From the NCBI RefSeq assembly GCF_044704955.1, contig NC_092006.1:5270001-5334000 (forward strand): a DNA stretch of 64,000 nucleotides, read 5' to 3'. The notes beneath the pieces are model-generated. The model worked only from the letters and a program-made list of their open reading frames with translations. It made no database searches and was not told the origin of the DNA. Positions 2,245 through 54,688 of this stretch are shown one piece after another. Source of the stretch: Pristiophorus japonicus. Taxonomy: Eukaryota. Both the position numbers and the translations under genes were made by a program. Every line of letters begins with the position of its first letter. The stretch's first letter is position 1.

Positions 2245-5200
2245 ATGTTGCTGGAAGCGTTTCCCCTGATCCTCACACTCCACCACGTGTGTTGGAATTA
2301 CGGTGAGTGACCCGTGCTTGGGACTAGCCAAAAACGGGAAACAAGGGGACTGTGTTTGCGGAGTTGAAAATGTGACCCAGCTTTTGCCCCGATATTTTCG
2401 CCCCCTCTCCCTATCTCTGTAACCTCCTTCAGTCCTGCAACCCTCCCTATCTCTGTAACCTCCTTCAGCCCTGCAACCCTCCCTATCACTGTAACCCCCT
2501 CCAGCCCCTCCAACCCTCCCTATCTCTGTAACCCCCTCCAGTCCCTACACCCCTCCCTATCTCTGTAACCCCCTCCAGCCCCTACAACCCTCCCTATCTC
2601 TGTAACGCCCTCCAGCCCCTACAACCCTCCCTATCTTTGTAACGCCCTCCAGCCCCTACACCTCTCCCTATCTCTGTAACCCCCTCCAGCCCCTACACCC
2701 GTCCCTATCTTTGTAGCCCCCTCCAGCCCCTACAACCCTCCCTATCTCTGTCACCTCCTCTAGCACCTACACCCCTCCCTATCTCTGTAACCCCCTCCAA
2801 CCCCTGCAACCCTCCCTATCTCTGTAACCCCCTCCAGCCCCTGCAACCCTCCCTATCTCTGTAACCTCCTCCAGCCCTCCAAACCCCCCGAGATCTCTGC
2901 GCTCCCCAATTCTCTTGAACAACCCCAATTGTAATGACTCAACCATCGGTGGCCGTGCCTTCAGCTGCCTGGGCCCCAAGCTCTGAAACTCCCTCCCTAA
3001 ACCTCTCCGCCTCTCTCTCCTCCTTTAAGACGCTCCTTAAAACCGACTTCTTTGTCCCAGCTTTTGATCATTACCTAATATCTCATTTTGTGACTCGATG
3101 TCAAATTTCCGTGAAGCGTCTTGGGACATTCAATTACGTTGAAGGCGCTTTATAAAAGATATTTTGTTGTTGATAATGTTGGTTTACTTTCAGGTCCTTC
3201 TATAAGGCTAAGCAAAGGCAAAGTAGAGAATAGGTCCAATCTGCCATAACTAAAGGCAATAATGCCGCTGGTCTTAAGTTACAGGCGATGGGTTTGAAAG
3301 TGGCCTCTCTCCATCTCTCAAAAATCAACATGAAGAAATTGTATTTATATAGCGCCTTTAATGTAGTGTCCTGGGGCCAATATTTATCCCTCAACCAACA
3401 TCGCTAAAACAGATGATTTGGGTCATTATCAAATTGCTGTGTGTGGGAGCTTGCTGTGCGCAAATTGGCTGCCGCGTTTCCCACATTACAACAGTGAGCA
3501 CACTCCAAAAAAAGGGCTTCATTGGCCGTAAAGCGTTTTGAGACGGCCGGTGGTCGTGAAAGGCGCTATATAAATCCAAGTCTTTCTTTCTTTTTAGTAA
3601 AACGCTTCACAGGAGAATTATTTTTAAAAATTTGACCCCGAGCCACATGAGGAGATATTAGGGACAGGTGACCAAAAGCTGGGTCAAAGAGATCGGTTTG
3701 AAGGAGCGTCTTAAAGAAGGAGAGCGAGGCGGAGAGGTTTAGGGAGGGAGTTCCAGAACTTGGGGCCCAGGCAGCTGAAGGCACGGCCACCGATGGTGGA
3801 GCGATGGAAATCAGGGGATGGGCAAGAGGGCAGAATTGGAGGAGTGCAGAGATCTCGGAGGGTCGTGGGGGCTGAAGAAGGTTACAGAGTTAGGGAGGGG
3901 TGTATGGGTTAGAGGAGGTTAAGAGATAGGGAGGAGTGTAGGGGCTGGAGAGGGTTACAGAGATCGGGAGGAGTGTAGGGGCTGGAGGGGGGTTACAGAG
4001 ATAGGGAGGGAAATAGTGGCTGGAGGGGGTTACAGAGATAGGGAACGGTTTAGGGGCTGGTGGAGGTTACAGAGATAGGGAGGGGTGTAGGAGCTGGAGG
4101 AGGTTACAGAGATAGGGAGGGGTGTAGGGGCTGGAGGAGGTTACAGAGATTGGGAGGGAAATAGTGGCTGGAGGGGGTTACAGAGAAAGGGAACGGTTTA
4201 GGGGCTGGTGGAGGTTACAGAGATAGGGAGGGGTGTAGGAGCTGGAGGAGGTTACAGAGATAGGGAGGGGTGTAGGGGCTGAAGGAGGTTACAGAGATTG
4301 GGAGGGGTGTAGGGGCTGGAGGAGGTTACAGAGATTGGGAGGGGTGTAGGGGCTGGAGTGATTTACAGAGATAGGAAGGGGTGGAGGGGCTGGAAGGGAT
4401 TACAGAGATAGGGAGCGGTTTAGGGGCTGGAGGGGGTTACAGAGATAGGGAGGGGTGTATGGGTTAGAGGAGGTTAAGAAATTGGGAGGGGTGTAGGGGC
4501 TGGAGGAGGTTACAGAGATTGGGAGGGGTGTAGGGGCTGGAGGAGGTTACAGAGATAGGGAGGGGTGTAGGGGCTGGAGGGGGTTACAGAGATAGGAAGG
4601 GGTGTAGGGGCTGGAGGGGATTACAGAAATAGGGAGTGGATTAGGGGCTGGAGGAGGTTACAGAGATAGGGAGGGGTGTAGGGGCTGGAGGAGATTACAG
4701 AGATAGGGAGGGGTGTAGGGGCAGGAGGTTACAGAGATAGGGAAGGTGTGTAGGGGCTGGAGGAGGTTACAGAGATAGGAAGGTGTGTAGGGGCTGGAGG
4801 GGATTACAGAAATAGGGAGGGGTTTAGGGGCTGGAGGGGGTTACAGAGATAGGGAGGGGTGTAGGAGCTGGAAGAGATTACAGAGATAGGGAGGGGTGTA
4901 GGGGCTGGAGGTTACAGAGATAGGAAGGGGTGTAGGGGCTGGAGGAGGTTACAGAGATAGGGAGGGGTGTAGGGGCTGGACGAGGTGACAGAGATAGGGA
5001 GGGGTGTAGAACTGGAGGAGGTGACAGAGCTCGGGAGGGGGCGCGGCCATGGGGGGGATTTAAACACAGGATGTGAATTTTGAAATCGGGGCGTTGTTTA
5101 ACCAGGAGCCAGTGTGGGTCAGCGAGCACAGGGGGCGATGGGTGAGCGGGACTGGCTGCGAGTTGGGACACAGGTCGGGGCTGCAGAAGTGTGGGATGAA

Positions 5201-8200
5201 CTGGCGTTGAAGGCGCGGGGGTTGGAGCGGACAAACCGTCTCTAATGGGACCCCCCCCCCTCTGTCCAGTCGCAGGATCTGAACCCTTCACTGTGACGGC
5301 GGCAGCCGGGGAGACGGTGGAACTGGAATGCCGCCTGGATTACGAAGTGGAAATCGTGGACAGCTACTTCTGGTACAAGCAACTCGTGGGGGAAGCGCCC
5401 AAGTTGGTGCATATACCAGCCTGCCGTGGAACCGTCTGCAAGTTTACTTCGAAGAGACGGCGCAACAAATATATCCTGGTCCTGCAAATCCTGAAAGTGA
5501 ACACTTCTGACGCCGCGTCCTACTCCTGTGCTGATAGGGATGGCTATGCTCCCCTTAGGAACGGTTCCTTGCTGCTGGTTGGAGGTAAGAACAAAGCCCG
5601 ATTGAATTCATCCCATGCACATGCGATTAAAATTGCATTAGCCAGAATTTAACTGTTTCTTCCATCTCCATCCCCACCCAGACAGTTCCACGCCTAAGAC
5701 CGATGTGCTGGTGTTTGTGACTCCAGGGGAGCCACCTGTGAGGGAAACCATCCCCTTGGTGTGTCTGGTGACCGGCGTGTCCTCCAGGCAAATTGCCATT
5801 TACTGGAACGTGTCGGGACAGTTCGTCGCGGGACGGAGCGAGGTCGGCACCCTGGACCCCAACGGGACCTACAGCATCAGAAGCCACGTGATGGTCGGGG
5901 CGGAGATCTGGAGCAACAGAGGGGTCTGCACTTGTATCGTCGAGCTGGGGTCGCCGGGCAAGTCTTGGAGCAAGAGCGTGTCCCGTCCCGAAGCGGCAAC
6001 AGGTGAGTCATAGAAACATCGAAACATAGAAAATAGGGGCAGGAGCAGGCCATTCGGCCCTTCGAGCCTGCACCACCATTCAATATGATCATGGCTGATC
6101 ATGCAACTTCAGTACCCCATTCCTGCTTTCTCTCCATACCCCTTGATCCCTTTATCCGTAAGGGCCACATCTAACTCCCTTTTGAATATATCCAACGAAC
6201 TGGCCTCAACAACTTTCTGTGGTAGAGAATTCCACAGTTTCACAATTCTCTGAGTGAAGAAGTTTCTCCTCATCTCGGTCCTAAATGGCTTACTCCTTAT
6301 CCTTAGACTGTGACGGGGAGCTCGGTTGCGAACGTGTAACATCAGTTGGACTGGTTCTCTTGCCCCTATTAAGCAACTCCGCGGGTCAAACACAGAGAGA
6401 TATCTATCAGGAGAAACAGTGCAGCCAGCCTATTGGGAAATACCTTGAAATAAGCCCACCCGTCCCAGGTCTTGTAAATAATTTCTCTGCTCTCGACTGC
6501 CCTTCGATTTCTGCCTGTCACCTTCGAATTATAGACTTACACAGCACAGAATCAGGGGTCACCCATTTAAGACAGAGATGAGGAGGAATTTCTGCACTCA
6601 GAAGGTTGTAAATCTGTGGAATTCACTGCCTCGGAGAGCTGTGGAAGAACATAATAACATAAGAAATAGGAGCAGGAGTCGGCCATTCGGTCCCTCGAGC
6701 CTGCTCCGCCATTTAATACGATCATGGCTGATCCGATCATGGACTCAGGTCCACTTCCCTGCCCGCCCCCTTAATCCCTTATCGATTAAGAAACTGTCTA
6801 TCTCCGTCTTAAATATATTCAATGTCCCGGCTCTCTGAGGCAGCGAATTCCACAGATTTACAACCCTCTGAGAGAAGAAATTTCTCCTCATCTCAGTTTT
6901 AAATGGATGGCCCCTTATTCTAAGATTATGCCCCCTAGTTCTAGTCTCCCCCATCAGTGGGGATCATTGAATAAATTTAAGACAGAGAGAGACAGTTTCT
7001 TAGCCGATAAGGGACTAAGGGGGCGGGCAGGGAAGTGGAGCTGAGTCCATGATCGGATCAGCCATGATCTTATTGAATGGTGGAGCAGGCTCGAGGGGCC
7101 GAATGGCCGACTCCTGCTCCTATTTCTTATGTTCTCATGTATATTCTATATCGGGAGAAACAATGCAGTCTGTCTGTTAAAAAATATGTTGAAATAAGCT
7201 ATGGTCACCCTCCAAACCAGGCCTTTTAAATATTTTCTCTGCTCTTGACTGCCCTTCGATTTCGGCGTGTCATCTTAGAATTATCGAATACAGCACAGGA
7301 GTCGGCCATTCGGCCCCTCGAGCCTGCTCCATCATTCAATAAGATCACGGCTGATCTTCGACCTCAACTCCACAATCCTGCACTGTCCCCACTTGGTTCC
7401 CCTCGAGTCCAAAAATCTATTACTCCCTGTCTCAACGACTGAGCCTCCATAGCCCTCTGGGGCAGAAAATTCCAAAGATTCACCACCCTCTGAGTGAAGA
7501 AATTCCTCCTCATCTCAGTCCTAAATGGCCGACCCCTTATCCTGAGACTGTGTGCCCCCTGGTTCTAGACTCCCCAGCCCGGGGGGAAACATCCTCCCTG
7601 CATCTACCCTGTCGAGCCCTGTCAGAATGTTGTATGTTTCAATGAGATCACCTCTCATTCTTCCAAGCTAGGAGTTTACAACATAGAAACATAGAAATTT
7701 ACAGCGCAGAAGGAGGCCATTTCATCCCATCGTATCCACACCGGCCGACAAAGAGCCACACAGGCCTCGGTCAGCAGCCCTGAAGGTTACATATAAACCT
7801 ACGAACGATGAACAATGACGGAAAGGCAAAGAGCACCCAGCCCAACCAGTCCGCCCCACACAACTGCGACACCCCTTACACCGAAACATTCTACACTCCA
7901 CCCCAACCATTGTCCAATTAGCCCCATTCCCCCAACCTTTTCCCCACAGTCCTGCAAAGTGTCACTCTCCAAGTATTTATCAAATTCCCTTTTGAAAGTT
8001 ATTAATGAATCTGCTTCTACTGCCCGCCAGCGCGTCTTGGAATAATTTTAAGATTAAAATCTATTTTAATTTTAATTTTGACTTGTGGATATCTGCAAAT
8101 CAGACATATTACCCTCGGGTTGTGACACTTCAGCGAAATCGGGTTATCGTTCCAGTTTAAGGATAAGGGGTAAGCCATTTAGGACCGAGATGAGGAGAAA

Positions 8201-11200
8201 CTTCTTCACCCAGAGAGTGGTGAACCTGTGGAATTCTCTACCACAGGAAGTTGTTGAGGCCAGTTCGTTGGATATATTCAAAAGGGCGTTAGATGTGGCC
8301 CTTACGGCTAAAGGGATCAAGGGTTATGCAGAGAAAGCAGGAATGGGGTACTGAAGTTGCGTGATCAGCCATGATCATATTGAATGGTGGTGCAGGCTCG
8401 AAGGGCCGAATGGCCTACTCCTGCACGTATTTTCTATGTTTCTATGTTTACAGCTCATAAAAAATAAGGGTGGATGTACATAAATCTTTGAAGGTGACAG
8501 AACAAATTGAAATGGTTGTTAATAATACATACAGAATCCTTGGGTTTATTAATAGACTACAGAAGCAAGGAAGTTATGCCAGACGTATATAAAGACAACA
8601 GTTGGGTCACCGCTGGAGTACTGTGTCCAATTCTGGGCACTGCACTCTAGGAATGATGTCAAGGCCGTGGAGAGGGCGTGGAGGAGATTTACGGGAATGG
8701 TCCTGCACTGGTACGCTCGCGGCCTTCCGCGAGAGGTGGGCACCGGAGGGACTGGAGTGCATCATCACCCCCCCGCCCCCGGCAGACAAATTTTCATTTG
8801 AATTCAGTTGATGGCCAAAACCGAATTTGTTTTCTTGTCGATCTTAGTGCCCCCTCTAATAAGGGGGCATTTGATTTTCGATTGACTGTTTCAACTAAAA
8901 TAGTTGCAGACCTGTTGATTGCGTCCTTAAAAAAGAGGGCACTTGATTTGAAAGTTTTACGCAAAATAGTTGAGGGACTTCAGTGAGGTGGAGAGACTTG
9001 AGAAACTGGGATTGTTCTCCTCAGGAGAAACTTCTTTACCCAGAGAACGGTGAGAATGTGGAACTCGCTGCCACAGGGAGGGGTTGAGGCTAATAGTATC
9101 GATGTATTTAAGGGGAGGCTGGATAAACACATGAGGGAGAAGGGAATAGAGGGATATGCTGATAGATTTAGATGAGGAAAGACGGCAGGAGGCTCGAGTG
9201 GGGCATAAACACCGGCACGGACTGGTTGGGCCCAATGGCCTGTTTCTGTTCCATATTGAGTAGACTGGGTCTTTACTCGTTGGAGTTCAGAAGGATGAGG
9301 GGTGATCTTATAGAAACATTTAAAATAATGAAAGGGAAAGACAAGATAGAGGCAGAGAGGTTGTTTCCACTGGTCGGGGAGACTAGAACTAGGGGGCTCA
9401 GCCTCAAAATACGGGGGAGCCAATTTAAAACCGAGTTGAGAAGGAATTTCTTCTCCCAGAGGGTTGTGAATCTGTGGAATTCTCTGCCCAAGGAAGCAGT
9501 TGAGGCTAGTTCATTGAATGTATACATACAGAATCCTTGGGTTTATTAATAGACTACAGAAGCAAGGAAGTTATGCCAGACGTATATAAAGACAACAGTT
9601 GAGTGAGAATGGTCTGCTCCTGCACCTATTTTCTATGTTTCTATATAATCCTGTGTAATAGTGCAACTTATTCCATTGGCGAGCATTCACTCGTCCAATA
9701 TTGGTCGCGTTGGTTGGTTTGTGGTTTCAAGTCACAGATAGATAGATTTTTAACCAATAAGGGAATTAAGGGTTACGGGGAGCGGGCGGGTAAGTGGACC
9801 TGAGTCCACGGCCAGATCAGCCATGATCTTGTTGAATGGCGGAACAGGCTCGAGGGGCTAGATGGCCTACTCCTGTTCCTAATTCTTATGTTCTTATGTT
9901 CTTATGTTCTTAGATCCGATGTAATCCTGTGTAATAGTGCAACTTATTCCGTGCTTGCTATTGAGGGAGTGCAGCGAAGGTTCATCAGTATGATTCCCGG
10001 GACGGCAGGACTGACATATGAGGAGAGACTGGATCGACTGGGCTTATATTCCCTGGAATTTAGAAGAATGAGAGGGGATCTCATAGAAACATATCAAATT
10101 CTGACGGGACTGGACAGGTTAGATGCAGGAAGAATGTTCCCGATGTTGAGGGAAGTCCAGAACCAGGGGTTACAGTCTAAGGATAAGGGGTAAGCCATTT
10201 AGGACCGAGATGAGGAGAAACTTCTTCACTCAGAGAATAGTGAACCTGTGGAATTCTCTACCACAAAGAGTTGTTGAGGCCAGTTCGTTAGATATGTTCA
10301 AAAGGGAGTTAGATGTGGCCCTCATGGCTAAAGGGATCAAGGAGTATGGAGAGAAAGCAGGAAAGGGGTACTGAGGGAATGATCAGCCATGATCTTATTG
10401 AATGGTGGTGCAGGCTCGAAGGGCTGAATGACCTGCTCCTGCACCTATTTTCTATGTTTCTATATAATCCTGTGTAATAGTGCAACTTATTCCATTGGCG
10501 AGCATTCACTCGTCCAATATTGGTCGCGTTGGCTGGTTTGTGGTTTCACAGCCCGCGTTGGATGCGCCTAAATTGTAACTGGGTCGCGTTTCTCACAAGT
10601 GAGTCGCAGAAAGAGTGGCTTGACCCAGCAACATTTTCTAAGTGTCCTGTCTTTGCAGACTGGTGTACACCGATCCTTCCGTTTGCAATTCGTGTCTCGG
10701 CGATCTTGGTTCTAGTACTGATCCTTATTATTCTGTGTCATCATAACTGCGGCAGACGAGGTGAGTGTTTATATCCGTCAAAAATATCTTTTATAAATGC
10801 TTGTTCAACGTGAGTCCCTTCTCGTATCTTTCGATACTAATTTACAGTGAACTGTTTCAGAAGGACGAGACAAGAGGCCCCGCCAGGAAAGGTGAGTAAT
10901 TGAACTATTTGCAAAGTTGATCAATGAGAGTCTCGCTGGGTTTAACACCGCGTCAGAACCAGTTTAACCCCAACTCTGATTCCAGTGCCAGATATTATTT
11001 GTGTTTTCCACGTTCTTTTTGAGTATGGTTCCAAGACCATTCCACAACTCTGTTCTCGGTATTTACGGCACGTGGCCACGGATTCACAGGAGGTAGAAAA
11101 GTAAAATACTGCGGATGCGAGCAATGTGACAGATACAGAGTTACAGACAGAGAGAGAGAGACAGACAGAGTCAGACAGACAGAGACAGCGACACAGAGAG

Positions 11201-12568
11201 AGAGGCAGAGAGATAGAGAGACAGACAGAGAGAGACAGGGACAGGCAGAGACAGCGACACAGAGAGAGAGAGAGACAGCGACAGAGAGAGAGAGAGAGAG
11301 AGGCAGAGATTGAGAGCGAGAGAGAGAGACAGAGACAGCGACGGAACAAGTTAGAGATGTAACCGGGTTTAAGCTCCACTTTCTCTGTACTTGCTGGAAA
11401 CATTTTTCCTACATTAAAACAATGACTACACTTCAAAAAAGTATGCCATTGGCTGTAAAGTGCTTTGGGAGCCCAGTGGTCGCTACAGAAACGCCAGTCT
11501 GTCTTTGTTTCATTTCTGTTTTATCTCTAACGTTCTCTCGAAGGGTAACAGACCTGAAAGGTTAACTCAGTTTCTCTCCACAAATGCTGCCTGACCCGCT
11601 GAGCATCACAAGAAGTAATGTTTGTCTCCTGTTTCTGTTCCCACACGGTTTCAGCTCCAGAGGGACAGTGAACAGAGCAGGAGGAGGTGAACCACACTTG
11701 GATGAGTTGGATTGAAATGTTGGCGCAAATAGAACGTCAAATGCAGGATATTTCAAAATTCAATTGGGTCATTGCCCGCCTTCAAAATATTCTCCTGTCT
11801 GCCGGACATCCAGAAAGGCTAATTACTGCTTAGTCATGCCAATTAATAATGTATCAGATTGTTAAATAATGTATCGGGTGGACAGTAGACTCCGGGGGTA
11901 GATCGTCCGTGCCCATCTATTGGTGTATTGGACCATTGGTGTATTGGACCATTGGTGTATTGAACCATTGGTTTATTGCACCATTGGTTTATTGGACCAT
12001 TGGTGTATTGCACCATTGGTGTATTGGACCATCAGTGTATTGGGGGAACATTGGTGTATTAATGGACCATTGGTTTATTGGGGGTCATAGGCTTAATGAT
12101 GGACTATTGGCGCTCAGTGCCTCTATAATTTATTATAAATGAGCCGGTCTTGACAATAATTAAATTCAAATTCTTAACTATTTATACACAGTTGACACCC
12201 ATCAAATGGAGGCAAGGCAGACACATCAGGGTACAAGACATGTAAGTAAATTCATTGACCCTGTTGCAATAATATACAGGAACTTGCCGATTTTCTGGGT
12301 ATCGCATGCAAATAATTGGCTTGTCTCTTTCAAAGAGCTGGCACGGGCACGATGGGCCGAATGGCCTATGCCTGTGCTGTATCATGCTACGATTCCTTGA
12401 AACGCGATTGCGGGACGGGATAGTTTGAGCTGCCTTTCGAATAACTTGGAACTTGTCGATATTTAACGTGTGTTCCTGTCTCAGGGCGCCCCGCAAGACC
12501 AGACTTTCTACGCCTCTCTGCAATTCAAAGCCGCGGAAAAGTCATCAAGAAAGAAGGCGGGTCGCTGA
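2245..12568 (+). CDS. Gene A: non-rearranging V-C1-TM IgSF receptor, 8 coding exons, ~330 aa, TM Arg, cytoplasmic TFYASL motif
   Basis: Exons: 2245-2302 (MLLEAFPLILTLHHVCWNY, gtgagt donor), 5270-5584 (V), 5682-6002 (C1), 10659-10760 (DWCTPILPFAIRVSAILVLVLILIILCHHNCGRR), 10861-10891, 11655-11686, 12192-12241, 12485-12568 (GAPQDQTFYASLQFKAAEKSSRKKAGR*). All GT-AG; phases 1,1,1,1,2,1,0 join into 993 nt with one terminal stop. The small cytoplasmic exons are the least certain. Confidence 0.85.
2400..2885. repeat. 37-bp minisatellite, C-rich orientation, within a LINE-like relic
   Basis: Unit about ccctccctatctctgtaaccccctccagcccctacaa. Confidence 0.9.
3860..5040. repeat. 37-bp G-rich minisatellite (~30 copies); also at 53875-54200
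   Basis: Unit gggaggggtgtaggggctggaggaggttacagagata. Confidence 0.92.
5270..5584 (+). CDS. Gene A V-domain exon (V plus degenerate J in one exon)
   Basis: GETVELEC...FWYKQ..GEAPKLV...DAASYSC...LRNGSLLLV; ctaat branch point, pyrimidine tract and cag acceptor; gtaaga donor. Alternative in-phase acceptor 6 nt downstream. Confidence 0.93.
5682..6002 (+). CDS. Gene A C1-like domain exon
   Basis: VLVFVTP...IPLVCLVTG...IYWNVSG...PNGTYSIRSHVMV..EIWS..GVCTCIV; phase 1/1; follows a 97-bp intron. Confidence 0.92.
6010..10463. mobile_element. Cluster of 5'-truncated CR1 LINE fragments, both strands, in gene A intron 3
   Basis: Repeated RRNFFTQRVVNLWNSLP peptide, shared 3'UTR, (ttctatgt)n or (ttcttatg)n tails. 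Confidence 0.9.
10659..10760 (+). CDS. Gene A stalk/TM exon
   Basis: tttgcag acceptor, gtgagt donor, hydrophobic run containing an Arg, stalk Cys. Confidence 0.85.
11128..11342. repeat. GA/CAGA-rich microsatellite
   Basis: Direct reading. Confidence 0.9.
11918..12080. repeat. 16-bp tandem repeat (ttggtgtattggacca)n
   Basis: About 8-9 degenerate copies. Confidence 0.85.
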
Positions 12569-13106: not shown

Positions 13107-13117
13107 AATAAAATAAA
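13107..13117 (+). promoter_or_regulatory. Probable poly(A) signal of gene A (overlapping AATAAA pair)
   Basis: aataaaataaa about 540 nt after the stop codon. Confidence 0.6.
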
Positions 13118-13258
13118 TGGTCCTTTGACTGTAATGATGCACAGGAGGTTCCTATCGTTCAATGCTTCACTTACAATTAAATGTCATCTGGATAAAACTT
13201 CGCTGGCTCTGAGCTGCCAATATCAGTCCTGAATTGAAAGAGTGTTAGTGGCGATATT

Positions 13259-42400: not shown

Positions 42401-44715
42401 ATTTATGAGTGACTGTCTTATATCGATGGCCCCCTCGTTCTGGTCTTCTCCCTCAAGTTGGAAGCATCTCTATTGTGAGGCAGAAGTGGATATGATCCAT
42501 TCAGACTTCCCTATAATGGTGGTGAGCACATATTTGAGGTATGGAGAACCCAGATGCAATGAAAATGGGTTAAGAATGTAAAAAAACACAAGATAAGGCC
42601 CGAGGACTGTGCAAGAAACAGACCTGGGAAACATAGACATAGAAACACAGAAAATAGGTGCAGGAGCAGGCCATTCGACCCTTCGAGCCTGCACCACCAT
42701 TCAATATGATCATGGCTGATCATGCAACTTCAGTACCCCATTCCTGCTTTCTCTCCATACTCCCTTGATCCCTTTAGCCGTAAGGGCCACATCTAACTCC
42801 TTTTTGAATATATCCAACGAACTGGCCTCAACAACTTTCTGTGGTAGAGAATTCCACAGGTTCACAATTCTCTGAGTGAAGAAGTTTCTCCTCATCTCGG
42901 TCCTAAATGGCTTATCCCTTATCCTTAGACTGTGACCCCTGGTTCTGGACTTCCCCAACATCGGGAATATTCTTCCTGCATCTAGAATTGGCTTCGAAAA
43001 GGCGGATCCCAAACAATAGTGAGAGTTAATAACTAACTTTACTGCATGCATTTCTGTTCGAACTATAAACGAGGTCAGGTGTAATCGAATAAACAGGGCT
43101 CGACGATTTCTGGAGACTGGGGCAAACCGGGTTCAACTGGGTGCTGTCTGTAATACACGTGTCTTAATTTCCAGAATTATCCAGATAACCAATTATTCAC
43201 ACGAGTGAATCTAGGTAAATAAGATTAACTCGCAGCACAACTCATTGCAAAATCCGTCGTCCCCTTTGAGGATTGATGGAACTTTATGTCAGAATATATG
43301 GGTTTAAAAAGAACAAGTTATGCCAGAAAGCAGCAGTAAGGGTGTGTTACCAGCTATAATCCGCAAACTCTGTATAAAACGTTGAGGGGGCTTGGAACCA
43401 GAAAAGCCAGCGTGTTGCAGACAATGTGCTGTCCCAGTATGGAGATCTGTGCTCCAATTTATTCTGTCCCAGGCCTCAAAACAGCAAATGTGCGGTTTGG
43501 TCACTCCTGGGAATCGCCACTTCTATCATCGCGGCATCCCCACCGACACCTGGGAGTCCCTGTGGCCAAAGACCAGTGGAGGAAGTGCATCCGGGAGAGC
43601 GCTGAGCACCTCGAGTCTGGTCGCCGAGAGCGTGCAGAAACCAAGCGCAGGCAGCGGAAGGAGCGTGCGGCAAACCTGTCCCACCCTCCCCTTACCCTCA
43701 ACCACTGTCTGTCCCACCCGTGACAGGGGACTGTGGCTCTCGTATTGGACTGTTCGGCCACCGAAGGACTCATGCTAAGAGTGGAAGCGAGTCTTCCTCG
43801 ATTCCGAGGGTCTGCCGACGATGATGATTATATTGTAGGACAGCTCTGTCTTCTACGTCAATGTGTATGCGCGTCGTGCACAACGGTTGATTCACATCCG
43901 AATCATTAAAAGATTTGTTTGCCAGTGATATCAAGGGCTTTTATTTTGCACTGGAAGTTGAGAATAAATGGACCTGAAACGGGAAGTTCTACTGACAGCA
44001 CTGCGGTATAGCGCCGGCTAGCGATGAAATTGATGTTGTGCAACCCCCCCCCAAAGGCCAGTTATCGCACTCAGTACCCCAGGGTGAGAGGTTCCTTGGG
44101 TATTTGACGATCCGGACATTTCTTTGGCCAGTACCGCGCGGACCCACTAATTCAAGAGGACTGGCGGGTCAGTGCTCAGTTGAAATCTGATAACCCCCAC
44201 ACAACAGAGAAATGCAGTTCATTGCAGGGGTCCCGCAAATAACCCATCTTTTAGCACCAGGAGGAGGCCATTCAGCCCCTCGAGCCTGCGGTTCCATTCA
44301 GTTAGCTCATGGGCTGATCTGTATCTTAACCCCATCCACCTGCCTTGGTCCCGTAACCCTGAATACCCTTACCCAACAAATAGCTATCCATCTTAGTTTT
44401 GACATTTTACAATTGCCCCCTCGCGCCCCCCCCCAGCCTCGACAGCTTTCTGAGGGAGAGAGTTCCACATTGCCACTACCCTTTGTGTGAAGAAGGGCTT
44501 CCTGACATCAACCCTCAATGGCCTGGCTCTAATTTTAAGGTGACATCCCCTTGTTCTGGACTCCCCCCACCAAGAGGCCATAGTTTCTCTCAATCTACCC
44601 CCTCAACTCCTTCAATCATCTTAAATACTTCAAATAGATCATTCCTTGATCTTCTATATTCAAGAGAATTCAAGCCTCGTCCATGCAAACGGTCCTCACA
44701 ATTGAACTCTTTCCC

Positions 44716-45380
44716 ATAGTGTCAGCTGTGGTTGTGGGTAGCACACTCGTCTCAGAGTCAGAAGGTCATCGGTTCAAGTCCCACTCCAGGAACTTGAGCA
44801 TATAAATCCAGGATGGCACTCCCAGTGCAGTGCTGAGGGAGCGCCGCACTGTCGGAGGGGCGGTGCTGAGGGAGCGCCGCACTGTCGGAGGGGCGGTGCT
44901 GAGGGAGCGCCGCACTGTCGGAGGGGCGGTGCTGAGGGAGCGCCGCACTGTCGGAGGGGCAGTGCTGAGGGCGCGCCGCACTGTCGGAGGGTCCGTACTG
45001 AGGGAGTGCCGCATTGTCATAGGGACGATACTGAGGGAGCGCCGCACTGTCGGAGGTGCTGTCTTTCAGATGAGACATTTAAACCGAGGCCCTGTCTGCC
45101 CTCTCAAGTGGATGTAAAAGATCCCATGGCACTATTTCGAAGAAGAGTAGGGGAGTTATCTCTGGTTCTTGGCCAATATTTATCCCTCAATCTACAAAGC
45201 AGATGATCTGGGTCATTATCACATTGCTGTGTGTGGGAGCTTGCTGTGCGCAAATTCTGCTGCCGCGTTTCTCACATTACAACAGTAACTATACTCCAAA
45301 AGTACTTCATTGCTGTAAAGCGCAGTTTGAGACATCCAGTGGTCATGAAAGGCGCTCTATAACTGCAATGGTTTTCTTCT
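44716..45380 (+). mobile_element. tRNA-headed SINE with 33-bp internal repeats
   Basis: ggttcaagtcccactcc B-box at ~44771; same body and tail as 16855-17732. Confidence 0.75.
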
Positions 45381-47217
45381 TTCTAGCCCCTGCATAATGT
45401 ATCTGTTTAAGTCTCAAATGAGGTACTGTATACTGGGATTACTCCAACCCCGGTAGATTTCTCTATTTGAACTAACCGGAACTACGCGTGAGTTGGATAA
45501 AATTTACCAAAGATATTTGATAGCATTCCATTGCTACCACAAGTCACACACCACCTCGGGATTTCCGGATCTGCTTTACAGCCAACGGAGCAACATTTTC
45601 AAGTGTGGTCACTGGTGCAATGTCGGGACACGCGGCCAATTTCCGCACAGCAAGCTCCCACAAACTCACGCTTACCAAAAGAAAATCACTAAACTGGCTG
45701 TAAAGCGCGTTGGGACGTCCTGATGTCGTGAAAGGCACTATATAAATTCCCTAAATTAAGAAGTGTGGGTTATAGACAGGCCCCAGTCTCTAGAACTTGT
45801 CGGTCCCTGTTTACCGATTACACCTAGTTCGAACAGAAATGCACACAGTAAAGTTAGTTATTTATTCTCAATATTGTTTCCGATCCTCCTTTTTCTAAGA
45901 GGAGCCAATTCTAGTTCTCGGGTCTGTTTCTTGCACAGTCCTCGGGCCTTATCTTGTGTGTTTTTACATTCTTAACACGTCTACATTACATCTGACTTCT
46001 CCATACCTCAAATATGTGCTCACCCCCCACCCCGTTATAGAGAAGGCTGTATGGATCCTATCCACTACCGTCTCACAATAGAGATGTTTCCACTTGTGGG
46101 AGAGCCTAGATCTAGGGGGCCATCACTATACGACAGTCACCCATAAATCCAATGGGGAATTCAGGAGAAACTTCATCACCCAGAAAATGGGGAGAATGTG
46201 GAACTCGCTGCCAAAGGGAGGGGTTGAAACATAGAATCATAGAAAATAGGTGCAGGAACAGGCCATTCGGCCCTTTGAACCTGCACCACCATTCAATATG
46301 ATCATGGCTGATCATGCAACTTCAGTACCCCATTCCTGCTTTCTCTCCATACCCCCTTGATCCCTTCAGCCGTAAGGACCACATCTAACTCCCTTTTGAA
46401 TATATCCAACGAACTGGCCTCAACAACTCTCTGCAGGAGAGACTTCCACAGGTTCACAATTCTCTGAGTGAAGATGTTTCTCCTCATCTCGGTCCTAGAT
46501 GGCTTACCCCTTATCCTGAGAGTGTGACCCCTGGTTCTGGACTTCCCCAACATCGGGAACATTCTTCCTGCATCTACCCGGTCCAATCCCGGCAGAATCT
46601 GAGGCGAATAGTATCGATGCATTTAAGGGGAGGCTGGATCAACACATGAGGGAGAAAGGAATAGAAGGATATGGGGATGGGGTGAGATGGAGAGTGGTGG
46701 GAGGGGCTGGTGTGGAGCATAAACCCCGGCACGGAGCGGTGGGGCTGAATGATCTGTTTCTGTGATGTACATTCTCTCTAATTTTCGAGAGAAAAGTGCC
46801 CCAGTCTGTTGAGCCTTTCCTGATCAGTATAACCTCTCTCAATTCTGGTGTCATCTTTCTGAATCTTGTTTACACCCGCTCCAGTGCCTCTATATTCTTT
46901 TGAAAGATGGAGACCAGAACCGTGCGCAGTGCTCCAAGTGTGGTCAAACTAACATGCGTAGAGACGAGGTGCCTTCTGTAACACAGATGGTGTGTGTGTG
47001 TTTTATCTCTTTACCTGTAAAAACAGGAAACCCACACAGAGCTTTCTGCCTTGGCACTATTTTGCAGCCCAAATCGTACATTTATTAATAAACACAGTGC
47101 GTGCTTACCACAATTGGCTCGGCATTTCACACCAGCCTCGCACCGACCTGCTGACAAGCATTCCTCCCTGAGCTGCCAGTCCCAGCATCAGAGTTCAACC
47201 CTCCTGGGGCAGTGATA

Positions 47218-50200
47218 ATGAGCTTCTGTGGCCTCTGTGTGCTGTTCCATCTCTTCCAAGGTGAGATAGCCTTCGATGTTTTGCCAGAGTGGGGAAGGGG
47301 TTAGGAGAGAGTCAACCAAGGGAAGGGTTTTGGAGCGAATTAATAAGGAAAAGGGTTTTGGAGAGAATTAATAAGGTGAAGGGTTTTGGAGGGAATTAAT
47401 AAGGAGAAGGGTTTTGGATAGAATTAATGAGGAGAAGGGTTTTGGAGAGAATTAAAAAGGAGAAGGGTTTTGGAGGGAATTAATAAGGAGAAGGGTTTTG
47501 GAGAGAATTAAAAAGGAGAAGGGTTTTGGAGGGAATTAATAAGGAGAAGGGTTTTGGATAGAATTAATAAGGAGAAGGGTTTTGGAGAGAATTAAAAAGG
47601 AGAAGGGTTTTGGAGGGAATTAATAAGGAGAAGGGTTTTGGATAGAATTAATGAGGAGAAGGGTTTTGGAGAGAATTAATAAGGAGAAGGGTTTTGGATA
47701 CAATTAATCAGGAGAAGGGTTTTGGATAGATTTAATAATGAGAAGGGTTTTGGATAGAATTAATAAGGAGAAGGGTTTTGGAGAGAATTAATAAGGAGAA
47801 GAGTTTGGATAGATTTAATAATGAGAAAGGTTTTGGATAGAATTAATAAGGAGAAGGGTTTTGGAGAGAATTAATAAGGAGCAGGGTTTTGGAGAGAATT
47901 AATAACGAGAAGGGTTTTGGAGAGAATTAATAAGGAGAAGGGTTTTGAATAGATTTAATAATGAGAAGGGTTTTGGATAGAATTAATAATGAGAAGGGTT
48001 TTGGATAGAATTAATAATGAGAAGAGTTTGGATAGATTTAATAATGAGAAAGGTTTTGGATAGAATTAATAAGGAGAAGGGTTTTGGAGAGAATTAATAA
48101 GGAGAAGGGTTTTGGATACAATTAATAAGGAGAAGGGTTTTGGATACAATTAATAAGGAGAAGGGTTTTGGATAGAATTAATAAGGAGACGAGTTTGGAT
48201 AGATTTAATAATGAGAAAGGTTTTGGATAGAATTAATAAGGAGAAGGGTTTTGGATACAATTAATAAGGAGAAGGGTTTTGGATAGATTTAATAATGAGA
48301 AGGGTTTTGGATAGAATTAATAAGGAGAAGGGTTTTGGAGAGAATTAATAAGGAGAAGGGTTTTGGAGAGAATTAATAAGGAGAAGGGTTTTGAATAGAT
48401 TTAATAATGAGAAGGGTTTTGGATAGAATTAATAAGGAGAAGGGTTTTGGATAGAATTAATAAGGAGAAGGGTTTTGGAGAGAATTAATAAGGAGAAGGG
48501 TTTTGGATAGAATTAATCAGGAGAAGGTTTTGGAGAGAATTAATAAGGAGAAGGGTTTTGGAGAGAATTAATGAGGGGAAGGTTTTGGAGAGAGTTAATA
48601 AGGAGGAGGGTTTTGGAAAGCATTAATAAGGAGAAGGGATTTGGAGAGAATTAATAAGGAGAAGGGTTTTGGATAGAATTAATAATGAGAAGGTGTTTTG
48701 GATAGAATTAATAATGAGAACGGTTTTGGATAGAATTAATAAGGAGAAGGGTTTTGGAGAGAATTAATAAGGAGAAGGGTTTTGGATAGATTTAATAATG
48801 AGAAGGGTTTTGGATAGAATTAATAATGAGAAGGGTTTTGGAGAGAATTAATAAGGAGAAGGTGTTTTGGATAGAATTAATAATGAGAACGGTTTTGGTT
48901 AGAATTAATAAGGAGAAGGGTTTTGGAAAGAATTAATAAGGAGAAGGGTTTTGGAGAGAATTAATAATGAGAACGGTTTTGGATAGAATTAATAATGAGA
49001 AGGGTTTTGGATAGAATTAATAAGGAGAAGGATTTTGGAAAGAATTAATAAGGAGAAGGGTTTTGGATAGATTTAATAAGGAGAAGGGTTTTGGATAGAT
49101 TTAATAAGGAGAAGGGTTTTGGATAGAATTAATAATGAGAAGGGTTTTGGATAGAATTAATAAGGAGACGGGTTTTGGATAGAATTAATAAGGAGAAGGT
49201 TTCCGATCGAGTAAAGAAGGAGAGATTGTTTCCAGTGGGAGGAGGGTGGGTAAGCAGAGGACACATGTTTGAGATAATCGGTAACAGAACCAGAGGGGGA
49301 GTTCAGGACGTGATTTCAAGCCCTGGGAGCTTGTGCTCGGGAACGCGCTGCCTGAAAGGGGCACTGGGAGCAGATGAAAAAGTGACTTTCAAACGGGGGA
49401 ATTGGATAAATATTTGGAAAGGAGGCAATATGCCGGGCTGTGGGGAAAGAGCAGGGGCGGAGTGGGAATGATTGAGTCGCTCTGTCACAGAGCCGGCACA
49501 ACACAGGTTTGATGGGCCGAATGGCCTCCTGTGTTGCATCGTTCGATGATACACAAGTTTGCGTTTAACTATAATTTTTTTAAGAAGCAGCTTAGATATT
49601 GGGCAAAGTATAAAGGTGTGCGGGCTTCGCTCAATACCGATCGCGCGACTTTGGAGCCGAACATTGTGATGGGTGAGTGGAAGCGAATGTGACACTGAAC
49701 TGCCCCCTAACTGAGATAAAGATGTCAGTGAACTCCGGTATTTGAAGGCGAGGGTCTGCCGTTGGGAGAGGGGGGCCTGTCTAGTGGAATTAGTGAGAAA
49801 GCTATCGCCCCATTTTAACATAATCAAGCGCCCCCCGGTCCCCAACCCCTGGAGAGATGGATTGGAGAGCCGGGTTAGACCAGGGGGAAGCATAATCGGT
49901 TTGGGAGAAGGCTTTTGCAATCTTAACTGCAGCCAGTCGCCATGGTGCTCGCCAATGATTGGAGCGGATTTCACAGCGAACGGACTCGGACTGTGCGCCT
50001 GTGGGAATTGCGGGCGGAGAGGCGCAATTTAACGGTGCGCAGCGCGGCGGAATGTCCCACACGCGCTCCCGACGCGCCAGTGGAGGGGAATTTGAGATGT
50101 GTCGGTATCCAGGGTGACTCGGGGGCCTATAACCTGTTGTTAATATTGTGTTTTTTTAATTTTTGTGTCCCCCCCCCCCCCCCCCCCGCAACCTTGTCTC

Positions 50201-53200
50201 AGCTGTCGTGTCTCAGGCGGTCTTGAGCCAATTTCCGGCGCTGCTAACGGCCGATGTCGGGAGCCTGGTCAAACTGCAATGCCAGTCCGGGAGGCTGGCC
50301 CCGGGCATCGTTTACTGGTACACACACTGGCCCCGAGAGGGCATGCGGCTCGTTTACAAAACCGGACGGTTCGTGACGCCCGGGGGAAGATTTTCCGGCG
50401 AGGTATGCAAGCAATCGGGGAATTATTCGCTGGTCATTGACAACGTCCAGAGGAACGATTCTGGGCGGTATTACTGCGCTGCTCCAAACGCCGGGAATCG
50501 GACCCTGATATTCGGGACTGGCACCACGCTGGTGATCACAGGTAATCCCACACGCCCATCCAATTGTGCGTCGAGACACCAATTCAAACCTGCCTTGTGC
50601 GCCTGGTTAATTCCAATTTCCCTTCCATCTAGCGGGCCCCCCGGTCCTCTTCCTCTTAACGCCGCCGCCGGCTGAGATTCCCCGGCTGGAGAGGGTGCCC
50701 TTGATGTGTCTGGTGCGGGGCGCTGCTCCCGACTCCTCCCCCATCCGCTGGCTGGTTGCGGGACGGGCCGCCGAGGGACGGAGCGAGCCCGGGACGCTGG
50801 AGCCGGACGGGAGCTATACCGCCAGAAGCGTCCTGAGCGTTTCGGCCGAAACCTGGCGCAGCGGCGCCGTCTGCACTTGCACCGTTCCGATCAACGCCAC
50901 CGGGGATCTCCTGAGTGAAAGCGTCGCGTCTCCGGGAGGTAACTGGAGCTACTGGCGGTTTGCCAAAGAGTTAGTGATAATAATGTTCATTATAGTATTG
51001 CTGGGATGTGAGGGTTTTTTTTGCACGAGAGATTGTGTAGAATGGGCCTATGTTCTCTGGAGTTTCGTATAAGATTATGAGGGGGCTTGACAAGGTGGAT
51101 GCAGAGAGGATGTTTCCACTGATGGGGGAGTCTAGAACTAGAGGGCATAATCTCAGAATAAGGGGCCGCCCATTTAAAACTGAGATGAGGAGGAATTTCT
51201 TCTCTGAGGGTTGTAAATCTGTGGAATTCGCTGCCTCAGAGAGCTGTGGAAGCCGGGACATTGAGTAAATTTACGATAGAAATAGACAGTTTCTTAACTG
51301 ATAAGTAACTAAGGGGTTATGGGGAGCGGGCAGGGAAGTGGAGCTGAGTCCATGATCGGATCAGCCATGATCGTATTGAATGGCGGAGCAGGCTCGAGGG
51401 GCCGAATGGCCGACTCCTGCTCCTATTTCTTATGTTCTTATGGAGTTTCGAAGAAGGAGAGGTGATCTCATTGAAACGTACAAGACTCTGAGGGGGATTG
51501 ACAGGGTGGATGCAGGGAGGGTGTTTCCCCCCGGGGCTGGGGAGTCTAGAACCAGGGGTCACACAGTCTCAGGGTAAGGGGTTGGCCATTTAAGACTAAG
51601 ATGGGGAGAACGTTCTTCACTTGCGATTTACTACGTTACAGGCGCTATATAAATATAAGTTGTTGTATATTGGGAGCACTAGTATGGAAAAGTAGTATTT
51701 TATAAATGACATGAGTTTGGAAAACAGCGAGACAGAGAGAGACCATATACACAAACCTGTAAATGTGGGAAGGGCAGGTTGGCGAGCTGGTTAAACTGGC
51801 TTACGGGGTACTTGAATTTATATAAGGAGATATTAGAACAGTTGACCAAAAGCTTGGTCAAAGAGGGAGGTTTTACAGAAGGAGGAGAGGCGGAGAGGTT
51901 TAGGGAGAGAGTTCCAGAGCTTGGGGCCCCAGGCAGCTGAAGGCACGGCCACCAATGGTGGAGCGATAGAAATCGGGGGGAATGCTCAAGAGGCCAGGAT
52001 TGGAAGAGCACAGAGATCACAGCCACTTACGTTGAGACAGTTCATAGTTCGTCACCATGTCTTTGATGATTCGGGCCAAAAACCAGCTTCAAACCCTCAG
52101 CGGACGAGGTTTCAGAATTTGACTGAATTATTTTGTGTTTCGCTCATTTCACAAGAGTTGTCTTTCTGCCGTTCAGAGCCCCTTCACAGCTCGACCTGCC
52201 GCTTCGCGCTTTATGCCAGCCTGGCGATGGCTCCTCTTGTGATGGGGTTGATCGGTGTCGCGGTGGCACGGCGTGGCAAGACTCGCCAACCAGGTACTGC
52301 CCGTCTGAGCCAAACCCTCAATTTCGCCTTTAGCTGAACCTCTCCCTTTGGCGTGCCGGCCTGGACATTAACGCCAGTCATCTTCTTAAACCTAGAGAGT
52401 GCAGCCACGACTGACCGAGGTACCGCTTCAAGAATAAAGAAAGCAGAAGAGGAGGTAGGTGCCACAAAGATGGGAGATGTTATTTTCATTAAAGAGCGGG
52501 GGGCGGGACTAATTGGATCATGCTTTCAAAGAGCCGACACAAGCTCGAAGGGCCAACTAGCCTCCTTCTGTGCTGTAAGATTCTATACTGGTGTCAAGTG
52601 TTTCATTGGTGTCCATGGACATGTCCGTTGTCAGTAACTTCAATGAGACATTCACATTAATACACTTGTGCCTCTCTCAGAAACAACCCAAAGCTATTCA
52701 CCTGCAATGAATTGCATAAGAACATAAGAACATAAGAATTAGGAACAGGAGTAGGCCATCTAGCCCCTCAAGCCTGCTCCGCCATTCAACAAGACCATGG
52801 CTGATCTGGCCGTGGACTCAGCTCCACTTACCCGCCCGCTCCCGTAACCCTTAATTCCCTTATTGGTTAAAAATCTATCTATCTGTGACTTGAATGCATT
52901 CAATGAGCTAGCCTCAACTGCTTCCTTGGGCAGAGAATTCCACAGATTCACAACCCTCTGGGAGAAGAAATTCCTTCTCAACTCGGTTTTAAATTGGCTC
53001 CCCCGTATTTTGAGGCTGTGCCCCCTAGTTCTAGTCTCCCCGACCAGTGGAAACAAACTCTCTGCCTCTATCTTGTCTATCCCTTTCATTATTTTAAATG
53101 TTTCTAGAAGATCACCCCTCATCCTTCTGAACTCCAACGAGTAAAGACCCAGTCTACTCAATCTATCATCATAAGGTAACCCCCTCATCTCCGGAATCAG

Positions 53201-54688
53201 CCTAGTGAATCGTCTCTGTACCCCCTCCAAAGCCAGTATATCCTTCCTTAAGTAAGGTGACCAAAACTGCACGCAGTACTACAGGTGCGGCCTCACCAAT
53301 ACCCTATACAGTTGCAGAAGGACCTCCCTGCTTTTGTACTCCATCCCTCTCGCAATGAAGGCCAACATTCCATTCGCCTTCCTGATTACCTACTGCACCT
53401 GCAAACTAACTTTTTGGGATTCATGCACAAGGACCCCCAGGTCCCTCTGCACCGCAGCATGTTGTAATTTCTCCCCATTCAAATAATATTCCCTTTTACT
53501 GTTTTTCTTCCCAAGGTGGATGACCTCACACTTTCCGACATTGTATTCCATCTGCCAAACCTTAGCCCATTCGCTTAACCTATCTAAATCTCTTTGCAAC
53601 AGTGATGTCTTGCATTTAAATAGCGCCTTTGATGTCCTAAGGCGCTTCACAGGAGCATTAGTCAGACAAAAATTAAAGGTCGAACCCCACGAGGAGAGAT
53701 TACGACAGGTGAGCAAAGGCTTGGCCGAGGAGGGAGGTTTTAAGGAGGAGAGAGGGGCGGAGAGGTTTAGGGAGGGAGTTCCAGAGCTTGGGGCCCAGGC
53801 AGCTGAAGGCACGGCCACCGATGGTGGAGCGATTATAATCAGGGATGGTCAAGAGGGCAGAATTGGAGGAGCAGTAGGAGATAGGGAGGGATGTAGGTGC
53901 TGGAGGAGAGTACAGAGATAAGGAGGGGTGTATGGGCTGGAGGAGATTACAGAGATAGAGAGGGGTGTAGGGGCTGGAGCAGGTTACAGAGATAGGGAGG
54001 GGTGTAGGGGTTGGAGGGGGTTACAGAGATAGGGAGGGGTGTAGGGGTTGGAGGGGGTTACAGAGATAGGGAGGGGTGTAGGGGCTAAAGGAGGTCACAG
54101 AGATAGGGAGGGATGTAGGGGCTGGAGGAGGTTACAGAGTTAGGGAGGGATGTAGAGGCTGGAGGAGGTTGCAGAGATAGGGAGGGGTGTAGGGCTGGAG
54201 GAGAGGCAGTACTGAGGGAGCGCCGCACTGTCGGAGGAGCAGTACTGAGGGAACACCGCACTGTCGGAGGGACCGTCTTTCGGCTGAGACGTTAAACCGA
54301 GGCACCATCTGCCCTCTCGGTTGTAAAAGATCCCGGGGCCACTATTGGAAGAAGAGCAGGGGGAGTTCTCCCTGGTGTCCTGGGGCCAATATTTATCCCT
54401 CAACCAACATCACTAAAAACAGATGATCCGGGTCATTATCACATTGCTGTGTGTGGGAGCTTGCTGTGCGCAAATTGAGCTGCCGCGTTTCCCACAATAC
54501 AACAGTGACTGCACTTCAAAAAGTACTTCATTGGCTGTAAGGCGCTTTGGGACGACCGGTGGTGGTGAAGGGCGCTATAGAAATGCACGTCTATTTCTTT
54601 TCAATATAGTTGAGCAGGAAGGTAACGGTTTTCTCGTGTTGTTCCTTCACAGACTATGTACGCGCACCTGGCATTCGCTGTGGATTAG
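47218..54688 (+). CDS. Gene D: VJ-C1-TM receptor, 6 coding exons, ~299 aa, TMYAHL motif
   Basis: Exons: 47218-47260 (leader), 50203-50541 (VJ), 50633-50938 (C1), 52177-52293 (EPLHSSTCRFALYASLAMAPLVMGLIGVAVARRGKTRQP), 52396-52454 (ESAATTDRGTASRIKKAEEE), 54653-54688 (TMYAHLAFAVD*). 900 nt in frame; AATAAA at 54901. Confidence 0.9.
47320..49200. repeat. 28-bp minisatellite (~65 copies) in gene D intron 1
   Basis: Reverse complement of the 36980-40130 unit. Confidence 0.95.
50203..50541 (+). CDS. Gene D germline-joined VJ exon
   Basis: QAVLSQFP...LQC...WY...DSGRYYCAAPNAGNRTLIFGTGTTLVIT; cag acceptor and gtaatc donor. Confidence 0.95.
50633..50938 (+). CDS. Gene D C1-like exon
   Basis: PPVLFLLTPP...VPLMCLVRG..PDSSPIRWLV...PDGSYTARSVLSVSAETWRSGAVCTCTV; follows a 91-bp intron. 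Confidence 0.92.
52717..53598 (-). mobile_element. CR1 3' fragment in the last intron of gene D
   Basis: CR1 peptides and tail. Confidence 0.9.

Follow-up and report, generated by a model that had tools for sequence, protein, structure and literature searches.

The 64,000-nucleotide stretch analyzed here (the window; contig NC_092006.1 of RefSeq assembly GCF_044704955.1, positions 5,270,001 to 5,334,000 of the forward strand) belongs to the Japanese sawshark, Pristiophorus japonicus, and appears to cover four members (genes A to D) of a larger cluster of immunoglobulin (Ig)-superfamily receptor genes that are encoded in the germline and do not rearrange. The intact genes each consist of a split leader, a V exon that includes a J-like G strand, an intron of 77–97 nt, a C1 domain, a stalk cysteine with a transmembrane (TM) segment, a small cytoplasmic exon, and an exon for a T-x-Y-A-x-L tail. 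The encoded proteins are predicted to be type I surface receptors, by which ligand would be bound through the V domain, with dimerization possibly through the stalk cysteine; the C-terminal tyrosine, which resembles that of an immunoreceptor tyrosine-based inhibitory or switch motif (ITIM or ITSM), could upon phosphorylation recruit SH2 phosphatases or adaptors. By analogy with SIRP-alpha, NITR, and KIR-type inhibitory receptors, the sawshark receptors would most likely damp leukocyte activation. We are highly confident of the identity and architecture of the four genes as described; for an inhibitory mechanism, which is read from the tail motif, the chances seem evenly balanced; and the favored explanation as a whole, identity and mechanism together, is probable.

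The window is repeat-rich vertebrate DNA with two assembly gaps (runs of N). Its six-frame open reading frames (ORFs) include four V-like and four C-like Ig exons, which form V-set/C1-set pairs at approximately 5.3–6.0 kb (gene A, + strand), 25.4–24.7 kb (gene B, − strand), 36.0–35.3 kb (gene C, − strand), and 50.2–50.9 kb (gene D, + strand). As the earlier note on this DNA had foreseen, Pfam finds both domains in all four genes, with V-set matches at E 6e-9 to 9e-12 and C1-set matches at E 4e-8 and 7e-8, the C1 of gene C being weak and below the cut-off (E 6e-3). A family-wide tblastn search recovered exactly four V–C1 pairs, and no orphan Ig exons outside these pairs in the 64-kb window. Each pair comes with exons for a leader, the TM segment, and a T-x-Y-A-x-L tail, the last of these at 12503 (+), 18926 (−), 30144 (−), and 54653 (+). 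The codons of the tail motif vary between the four genes mainly at third positions, and the frame that contains the tyrosine is thus the conserved frame in all four. Exon models with AG/GT sites and consistent phases were obtained for all four genes. Those of A, B, and D show AG/GT junctions throughout, follow the phase series 0-1-1-1-1-0, and keep an open frame; these are intact six-exon genes, and gene C is damaged.

Exon lengths are the same in genes B and D (leader, VJ, TM, and cytoplasmic exons of 43, 339, 117, and 59 nt, respectively), with corresponding lengths of 58, 309, 102, and 44 nt in gene A; gene C deviates. The V-to-C1 intron spans 77 nt in gene B, 91 nt in genes C and D, and 97 nt in gene A, and the leader exons lie ~3 kb (A and D) or ~4.2 kb (C) 5′ of the V exons, behind minisatellites. 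The J motif reads FGNGSKLLIT in gene B and FGTGTTLVIT in genes C and D, with a degenerate LRNGSLLLVG in gene A. The key residues of the family (V cysteine pair, WY, DSGxYxC, FGxG, C1 cysteine pair, stalk cysteine, and tail YAxL) are all present in genes B and D; gene A lacks FGxG (LRNG), and gene C lacks the stalk cysteine and the C1 E–F loop.

The phases at the end of the TM exon (1) and at the start of the tail exon (0) do not fit each other in genes A, B, and D. A small cytoplasmic exon is needed in these genes because a TM-to-tail join alone leaves the tyrosine motif out of frame, and direct TM-to-tail splicing was rejected on these grounds. Comparison of the four TM-to-tail intervals by blastn and tblastx detected no conserved small exon; the exon was recovered from a database model (P0001) and by splice-site enumeration, in which the 59-nt exon of gene D ranks top and which also yields an exon of 59 nt in gene B and of 44 nt in gene A. 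The earlier note had described four genes with leader, VJ exon, short intron, C1, TM, and T-x-Y-A-x-L tail. All four are indeed there, although only three look functional, and the small cytoplasmic exon of A, B, and D was missing from that list.

The exons of genes A, B, and C were searched singly, with gene D represented by P0001, a P. japonicus protein of 299 residues named “immunoglobulin kappa light chain-like”. In an exhaustive HMMER search, the V exon of gene D was 100% identical to P0001, and all 299 residues match the six translated exons of the gene (+ strand). These are the leader exon (47218–47260; MSFCGLCVLFHLFQ, identical to residues 1–14), the VJ exon with FGTGTTLVIT (50203–50541) and the C1 exon (50633–50938), both 100% identical to P0001, the exon for the stalk (PLHSSTC) and TM (52177–52293; residues 230–268), the 59-nt cytoplasmic exon (52396–52454; SAATTDRGTASRIKKAEEE, contained in P0001), and the tail exon (54653–54688; TMYAHLAFAVD and stop, the C-terminus of P0001). 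A copy of a short interspersed element (SINE)-like sequence (54284–54601) ends ~50 nt before the tail exon.

A 1,111-nt contig from a public run (X1), aligned to positions 50100–54900, covers the V, C1, TM, and tail exons of gene D in spliced form, with pieces at 50201–50539, 50631–50936, 52175–52291, and 54651–54840, the last including 3′ untranslated region (UTR). In the contig, these pieces follow one another directly, apart from a stretch of exactly 59 letters between TM and tail that was not placed and that equals exon 5 in length; upstream of the V piece there are another 100 letters, which would accommodate a leader exon and 5′ UTR. Thus, V–C1 is joined to the TM and tail exons, the outcome that had been proposed as a transcript test of the gene models. 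X1 is the sole public run with the V–C1 stretch, and the kind of run is not on record; it is much more likely to be RNA than DNA, and the contig data cannot show expression level or rare variants. A second P. japonicus model from outside the window, P0151 (339 residues), has 96% identity to gene D in V, and its TM and tail are the same as those of the gene. The N-terminus of P0151 is the translation of a non-coding ORF just 5′ of the V exon, matching window positions 49942–50109, and this model has therefore probably missed a distant leader exon.

The window genes are non-rearranging, because VJ lies in one exon, no recombination signal sequences (RSS) are present, and across the V–J boundary the spliced contig runs co-linear with the germline sequence. 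In genes B, C, and D, the V domain continues unbroken via YxC, a short stretch resembling complementarity-determining region 3, and FGxG to the donor site in one exon (gene A has LRNG). An RSS search (heptamer and nonamer with up to two mismatches, spacer of 12 or 23 ± 1) returned none in the 64-kb window on both strands, vs. 0.17 expected in shuffles. The FGxG motif of B, C, and D, and the lack of both RSS and separate J segments, with V running into a J-like strand and donor within one exon, had been noticed from the sequence beforehand, and both observations hold.

A V fused to a J-like FGxG segment could also be explained if these were germline-joined Ig light chain (IgL) or T cell receptor (TCR) genes or pseudogenes, made by RAG activity in germ cells. 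The V domain of gene D is generically similar to those of Ig lambda/kappa and TCR alpha/delta (E 1e-18 to 1e-11), the nearest solved folds of an AlphaFold model are Ig lambda light chains and TCR beta (~25% identity), and database names agree with such an origin. Nevertheless, we consider it extremely improbable. The V–C1 intron of 77–97 nt is not a J–C intron; the TM, cytoplasmic, and tyrosine-tail exons are present and spliced on; and no remnants of RSS occur in the window. Furthermore, the best solved match of the C1 of gene D is UrIg2 chain 9dmx (whole-chain E 2.7e-18; best domain 32 bits), followed by Ig heavy chain constant domains, and neither IgL nor TCR C is among the best solved matches of this domain. 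Window V and C1 domains are 35–65% identical to members of their own elasmobranch family vs. ~25–35% to Ig/TCR chains, and by identity there is no nesting within Ig or TCR; the architecture is kept at 35–56% identity over sharks and rays, in two old V lineages. In the AlphaFold model, V and C1 form a two-domain ectodomain followed by a TM helix and a disordered tail (pLDDT 73, with both Ig domains mostly >80). In a language-model protein atlas, the clusters that come after those of the family itself are SIRP and tapasin-like, with SIRP as the first that bears a name.

The receptor family to which we assign the window genes extends across sharks and rays. Word-based and profile searches identified 27–29 homologous proteins of ~220–320 residues in at least 15 shark and ray species, with 35–56% identity and often several per contig, in the genera Heterodontus, Mustelus, Scyliorhinus, Cetorhinus, Carcharodon, Rhincodon, Hemiscyllium, Chiloscyllium, Stegostoma, Pristis, Hypanus, Mobula, and Leucoraja; database models of the family include P0001, P0156, P0166, and P0059. 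Among the best matches listed, the window C1 exons have 41–67% identity to family members, and the V exon of gene D has 47–55%. The V cysteines, WY, DSGxYxC, FGxG, C1 cysteines, stalk cysteine, and tail tyrosine are invariant in the family alignment. Database names conflict, and include kappa, lambda, gamma-1, alpha-2, “Mem5-like”, “TCR beta-like”, and “uncharacterized”. Both the expectation of a multigene family of cartilaginous fish and the prediction that its members would be mislabeled by automated annotation are borne out, with names such as “Ig kappa/lambda light chain-like”, “Ig heavy chain Mem5-like”, and “T cell receptor beta chain-like”. In shark genomes, genes of this family contaminate automated counts of Ig and TCR loci. 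Four frog proteins (P0178–P0182 range) have the VJ-C1-TM architecture at 27–33% identity, three of them with I-x-Y-x-x-L tails. P0115 of Stegostoma (209 residues) has no C1 domain and reads VJ-TM-tail, and P0167 (Cetorhinus) and P0174 (Stegostoma) stop shortly past the TM with no tyrosine tail; such models may represent V-only and tail-less forms or errors of annotation, and the C1-less P0115 may link the family to V-only receptors. No description of an elasmobranch VJ-C1-TM-YxxL family was found in the literature that could be searched.

In the V tree, the family divides into two lineages (99/99 support), each with sharks and rays; gene B falls in one and genes C and D in the other. In the C1 tree, five Heterodontus genes from both V lineages cluster together, the C1 of gene B stands apart from the C1 clade of its V relatives, and C1 exons group partly by species. 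The V and C1 histories thus differ, suggesting that exons have been exchanged, or genes converted, within clusters, and the chimeric gene C is a local instance of exon exchange.

Several points weigh against the account given above. Gene B is in three pieces parted by the assembly gaps; order, strand, and phase are those of one gene, but the pieces may have been scaffolded from paralogues. Exon 5 of gene A, like the leaders of genes A and B, is a prediction. The 1,111-nt contig has nine differences from gene D in V and C1, and those that were compared fit P0151; its source is most likely an allele or near-identical paralogue of gene D (P0151 type), and, if X1 were DNA, a spliced contig could in principle represent a processed copy. 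A homodimer prediction with two copies of the gene D ectodomain (P0001 residues 20–240) scored 0.14, which is evidence neither for nor against dimerization. Finally, a lone YxxL after acidic residues could be a hemITAM or a YxxPhi sorting signal.

This last point amounts to a rival reading of the tail, in which the architecture is as described and the lone C-terminal YxxL is either an activating hemITAM-type motif that signals through Syk or an endocytic YxxPhi sorting signal. Such a hemITAM recruits Syk in Dectin-1 and CLEC-2. Consistent with this reading, each tail has a single tyrosine motif with acidic residues in front of it (AEEETMYAHL, RDKETLYAHL, RERDIYAQL), and the residue at Y-2 is Asp in 5 of 30 tails, all five being ray sequences. 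Against it, Y-2 is T in 20 of the 30 tails and S or I in another five, such that 25 of 30 fit an ITSM/ITIM (two models have no tail), and the frog relatives have the canonical I-x-Y-x-x-L. The conserved Ala at Y+1, and [AT]-[FIV] past the Leu, also exceed what a plain sorting signal has. Judging from motif residues, we regard the hemITAM or sorting-signal reading as rather unlikely; the T/S/I-x-Y-x-x-L pattern would favor ITSM/ITIM-type signaling, either inhibitory or SAP-switchable.

Gene C (− strand) is the damaged member of the cluster. Its leader exon (40192–40234), located by tblastn with P0001, has the same residues as that of gene D, and its VJ exon (35659–35997) differs from gene D at 8 nt (7 amino acids). 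The C1 exon (35292–35567) has a 30-nt in-frame deletion by which SAETWRSGAV of the E–F loop is lost, the TM exon (32775–32881, 107 nt) has no stalk cysteine and a phase-0 donor, and no 59-nt cytoplasmic exon was detectable in the gene. The last exon (29881–30144; TLYAQLAFNTEPTL…), which is 85% identical to the tail region of gene B, stays open for 87 codons before a late stop. The reading frame is preserved even so, given that 107 and 117 + 59 are both 2 mod 3, and the tyrosine would lie five residues from the membrane. Having lost the small exon and the stalk cysteine as well as ten residues of C1, gene C is probably defective.

Genes C and D form a head-to-head inverted duplication (35292–50938) that extends from the leader regions to the C1 donor, with 97% identity over 1,659 nt; identity is 97% from ~1 kb 5′ of the V exon to C1 and 96.7% around the leader exons, and the similarity ends at the C1 donor. 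Gene C is a recent inverted copy of the 5′ half of gene D fused to a B-like 3′ half. A 28-bp minisatellite fills the leader intron of gene D (47318–49199, ~67 copies) and has a twin in gene C (38169–40158, ~71 copies); the two arrays have 91–92% matches and begin ~35–60 nt past the leader exons.

The state of gene C, with its 30-nt C1 deletion and late stop and without stalk cysteine or exon 5, raises the question of whether the cluster is largely decaying, with unexpressed relics for genes and a database model that is a prediction without function. The V exons of C and D differ by seven non-synonymous changes and one synonymous change, which is compatible with neutrality (the sample of eight changes is small), and no run on record as RNA was found. 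General decay is nonetheless very unlikely: the frames of A, B, and D are open through all exons with splice sites intact, a spliced contig exists for the D type, and key residues are invariant in species parted since before the shark–ray split.

Gene B (− strand) begins with a candidate leader exon (26424–26466; MHRLAPCVLALLFP) of 43 nt as in gene D, which matches the family leaders in length, Cys7, and phase. Both N gaps of the window sit in introns of this gene, and neither an exon nor a reading frame crosses a gap: one gap (25660–25893) lies in intron 1, the leader intron, with flanking exons that keep order, strand, and phase, and the other (23141–23354) in intron 3, between C1 and TM. 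The 339-nt VJ exon with FGNGSKLLIT (25047–25385) has a Pfam V-set match, belongs to V lineage 1, and, among the best matches listed, is 51–56% identical to V domains of other sharks and rays. The C1 exon (24667–24969) is supported by splice sites and by family C1 matches, those listed as best having 61–67% identity. The exon model places the stalk (PLHSDC) and TM in 117 nt, as in gene D (22886–23002), and splice-site enumeration yields the cytoplasmic exon (21451–21509; NTASDEKFTDSRPGARDKE), which at 59 nt also has the length of that in gene D; its end (…RPGARDKE) resembles Scyliorhinus and Heterodontus tails, which end …RDKE/QEKE before TLYA. The tail exon (18849–18926; TLYAQLAFKADPTV… and stop) was identified by tail motif and exon model. 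The last intron contains a 38-bp tandem array (19848–20768; 24 copies, 94% matches) derived from part of the long interspersed element (LINE) sequence described below, and a SINE-like copy (25958–26261) flanks the gap upstream of the V exon.

Gene A (+ strand) is the most divergent in its V exon (5276–5584), which has the degenerate J motif LRNGSLLLVG and was delimited by its Pfam V-set match (E 6e-9), splice sites, and phase. It shares just 24–32% identity with its counterparts in B, C, and D, and ~33% with family members among the best matches listed; by language-model features it is nearest to an “immune-type receptor” cluster, and in the V tree it occupies a very long branch, such that its placement is unreliable. 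The predicted leader (2245–2302; MLLEAFPLILTLHHVCWNY) is a hydrophobic ATG exon with a GTGAGT phase-1 donor. The C1 exon (5682–6002; Pfam C1-set E 4e-8) has 41–48% identity to family C1 domains, again among the best matches listed. A hydropathy scan located the exon for the stalk cysteine (DWC) and TM (10659–10760), which has AG/GT sites, phase 1 to 1, and an Arg near the outer end of the TM. Only two candidates for the cytoplasmic exon combine an open frame with good splice sites and phase 1 to 0; the better of them, a 44-nt exon (10848–10891), brings the tail into frame. The tail exon (12485–12568; GAPQDQTFYASLQF… and stop) was placed by tail motif and exon model. The leader intron contains 37-bp arrays in both orientations (2407–2877 and 3857–5040), the unit of which recurs in the last intron of gene D (53878–54203).

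Other repeats are distributed throughout the window. A minisatellite with a 33-bp unit (CCTCCGACAGTGCGGCGCTCCCTCAGTACTGCC) and up to 40 copies occurs at 17153–17508, 44830–45056, and 60741–62049, and, being open in several frames, gives rise to long spurious “ALPQYCPSDS” ORFs. A LINE-type ORF2 in two pieces of 497 and 331 residues, with endonuclease and reverse-transcriptase-like sequence, lies at 55993–58494 (+ strand), and all introns of genes A to D harbor shorter fragments from the 3′ end of this element (FRRMRGDLIE…RNFFTQRVVNLWNSLP), which are numerous. The SINE-like element, recognizable by the ORF artefact “MIWVI..LCVGACCAQ”, adjoins or lies within genes at 3366–3590, 25958–26261, the 45203 region, and 54284–54601.

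Single-exon VJ + C1 genes are the sought-after relatives of the gene that was split by the RAG transposon to make antibodies and TCRs. In sharks, only UrIg, UrIg2, and NKp30 have been named as such genes by recent work (PMC12227049, PMC10751288). A VJ-C1 receptor family with its own tyrosine tail would be a third and far more numerous class, spanning sawsharks to rays, with look-alikes in frogs, and hidden behind “light chain-like” names; it offers testable material on how V–C1 chains paired and signaled before rearrangement. Both V lineages occur in every well-sampled species, and both have the stalk cysteine. From this premise, the family could be conceived as an undescribed elasmobranch-wide counterpart of the antigen-receptor-precursor lineage, in which B-type and C/D-type chains pair as disulfide-linked heterodimers. 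We consider this unlikely; if true, it would amount to a germline-encoded alpha/beta-like receptor with built-in signaling tails, diversified by exon exchange inside a cluster of nearly a megabase rather than by RAG.

Comparison with known systems places the window genes among several non-rearranging receptors, and distinguishes them from each. With TCR and IgL, including the germline-joined IgL of sharks, they share an ectodomain of V-J-C1 type and a cysteine that is membrane-proximal or C-terminal; unlike these, they have no RSS, no separate J, a V–C intron of 77–97 nt, and a signaling tail of their own. The features of a germline-joined IgL (IgL-isotype C, kb-scale J–C intron, and a secreted chain without TM) are absent from the window genes. 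In NKp30/NCR3, VJ is followed directly by stalk and TM with no C domain, whereas all four window genes have a C1-set exon.

Teleost NITRs share with the window genes a germline VJ-type V, large fast-evolving clusters, and, often, ITIM tails. NITRs are found in ray-finned fish and carry a V domain alone or together with one of I type; the second domain of the window genes is C1-set. SIRP genes also have a V with J-like strand, C1-set domains, TM, and an ITIM-bearing tail, and form a paired or multigene family; however, they have two C1 domains and several tyrosines, in contrast to one C1 and one C-terminal YxxL in the window genes, and the likeness seen is one of architecture.

PRARP is reportedly a linked gene pair in non-mammalian bony vertebrates with the same architecture as the window genes. 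The two agree, by architecture only, in having a VJ exon that does not rearrange, a single Ig domain of constant type, a TM segment, and a cytoplasmic tyrosine motif; the said linked pair of PRARP differs from an elasmobranch multigene cluster with two old V lineages. The frog VJ-C1-TM-[I]xYxxL proteins may be PRARP-type genes (PRARP is cited in PMC10751288).

Closest in host are UrIg and UrIg2, which, like the window genes, are elasmobranch and non-rearranging, with single-exon VJ, a split leader, and C1-type domains. UrIg2 is described as one of the single-exon VJ genes with split leader and several C1 domains that are auto-annotated as IgL; UrIg is one gene with three C domains, and is secreted, and UrIg2 is one gene with nine or more C domains (PMC12227049). 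The same paper mentions neither ITIM, SIRP, or PRARP, nor a one-C1 tyrosine-tailed family (PMC12227049). UrIg and UrIg2 thus have at least three C domains, whereas the window genes are multigene, with a single C1 exon each and a tyrosine tail, and no further Ig exons that would give at least three C1-type domains occur in the window. The uniqueness that the earlier note had suggested was overstated, given that the architecture is common to PRARP, SIRP, and UrIg-type genes; the window genes are members of a widespread predicted family with known architectural analogues among PRARP/SIRP-like non-rearranging receptors.

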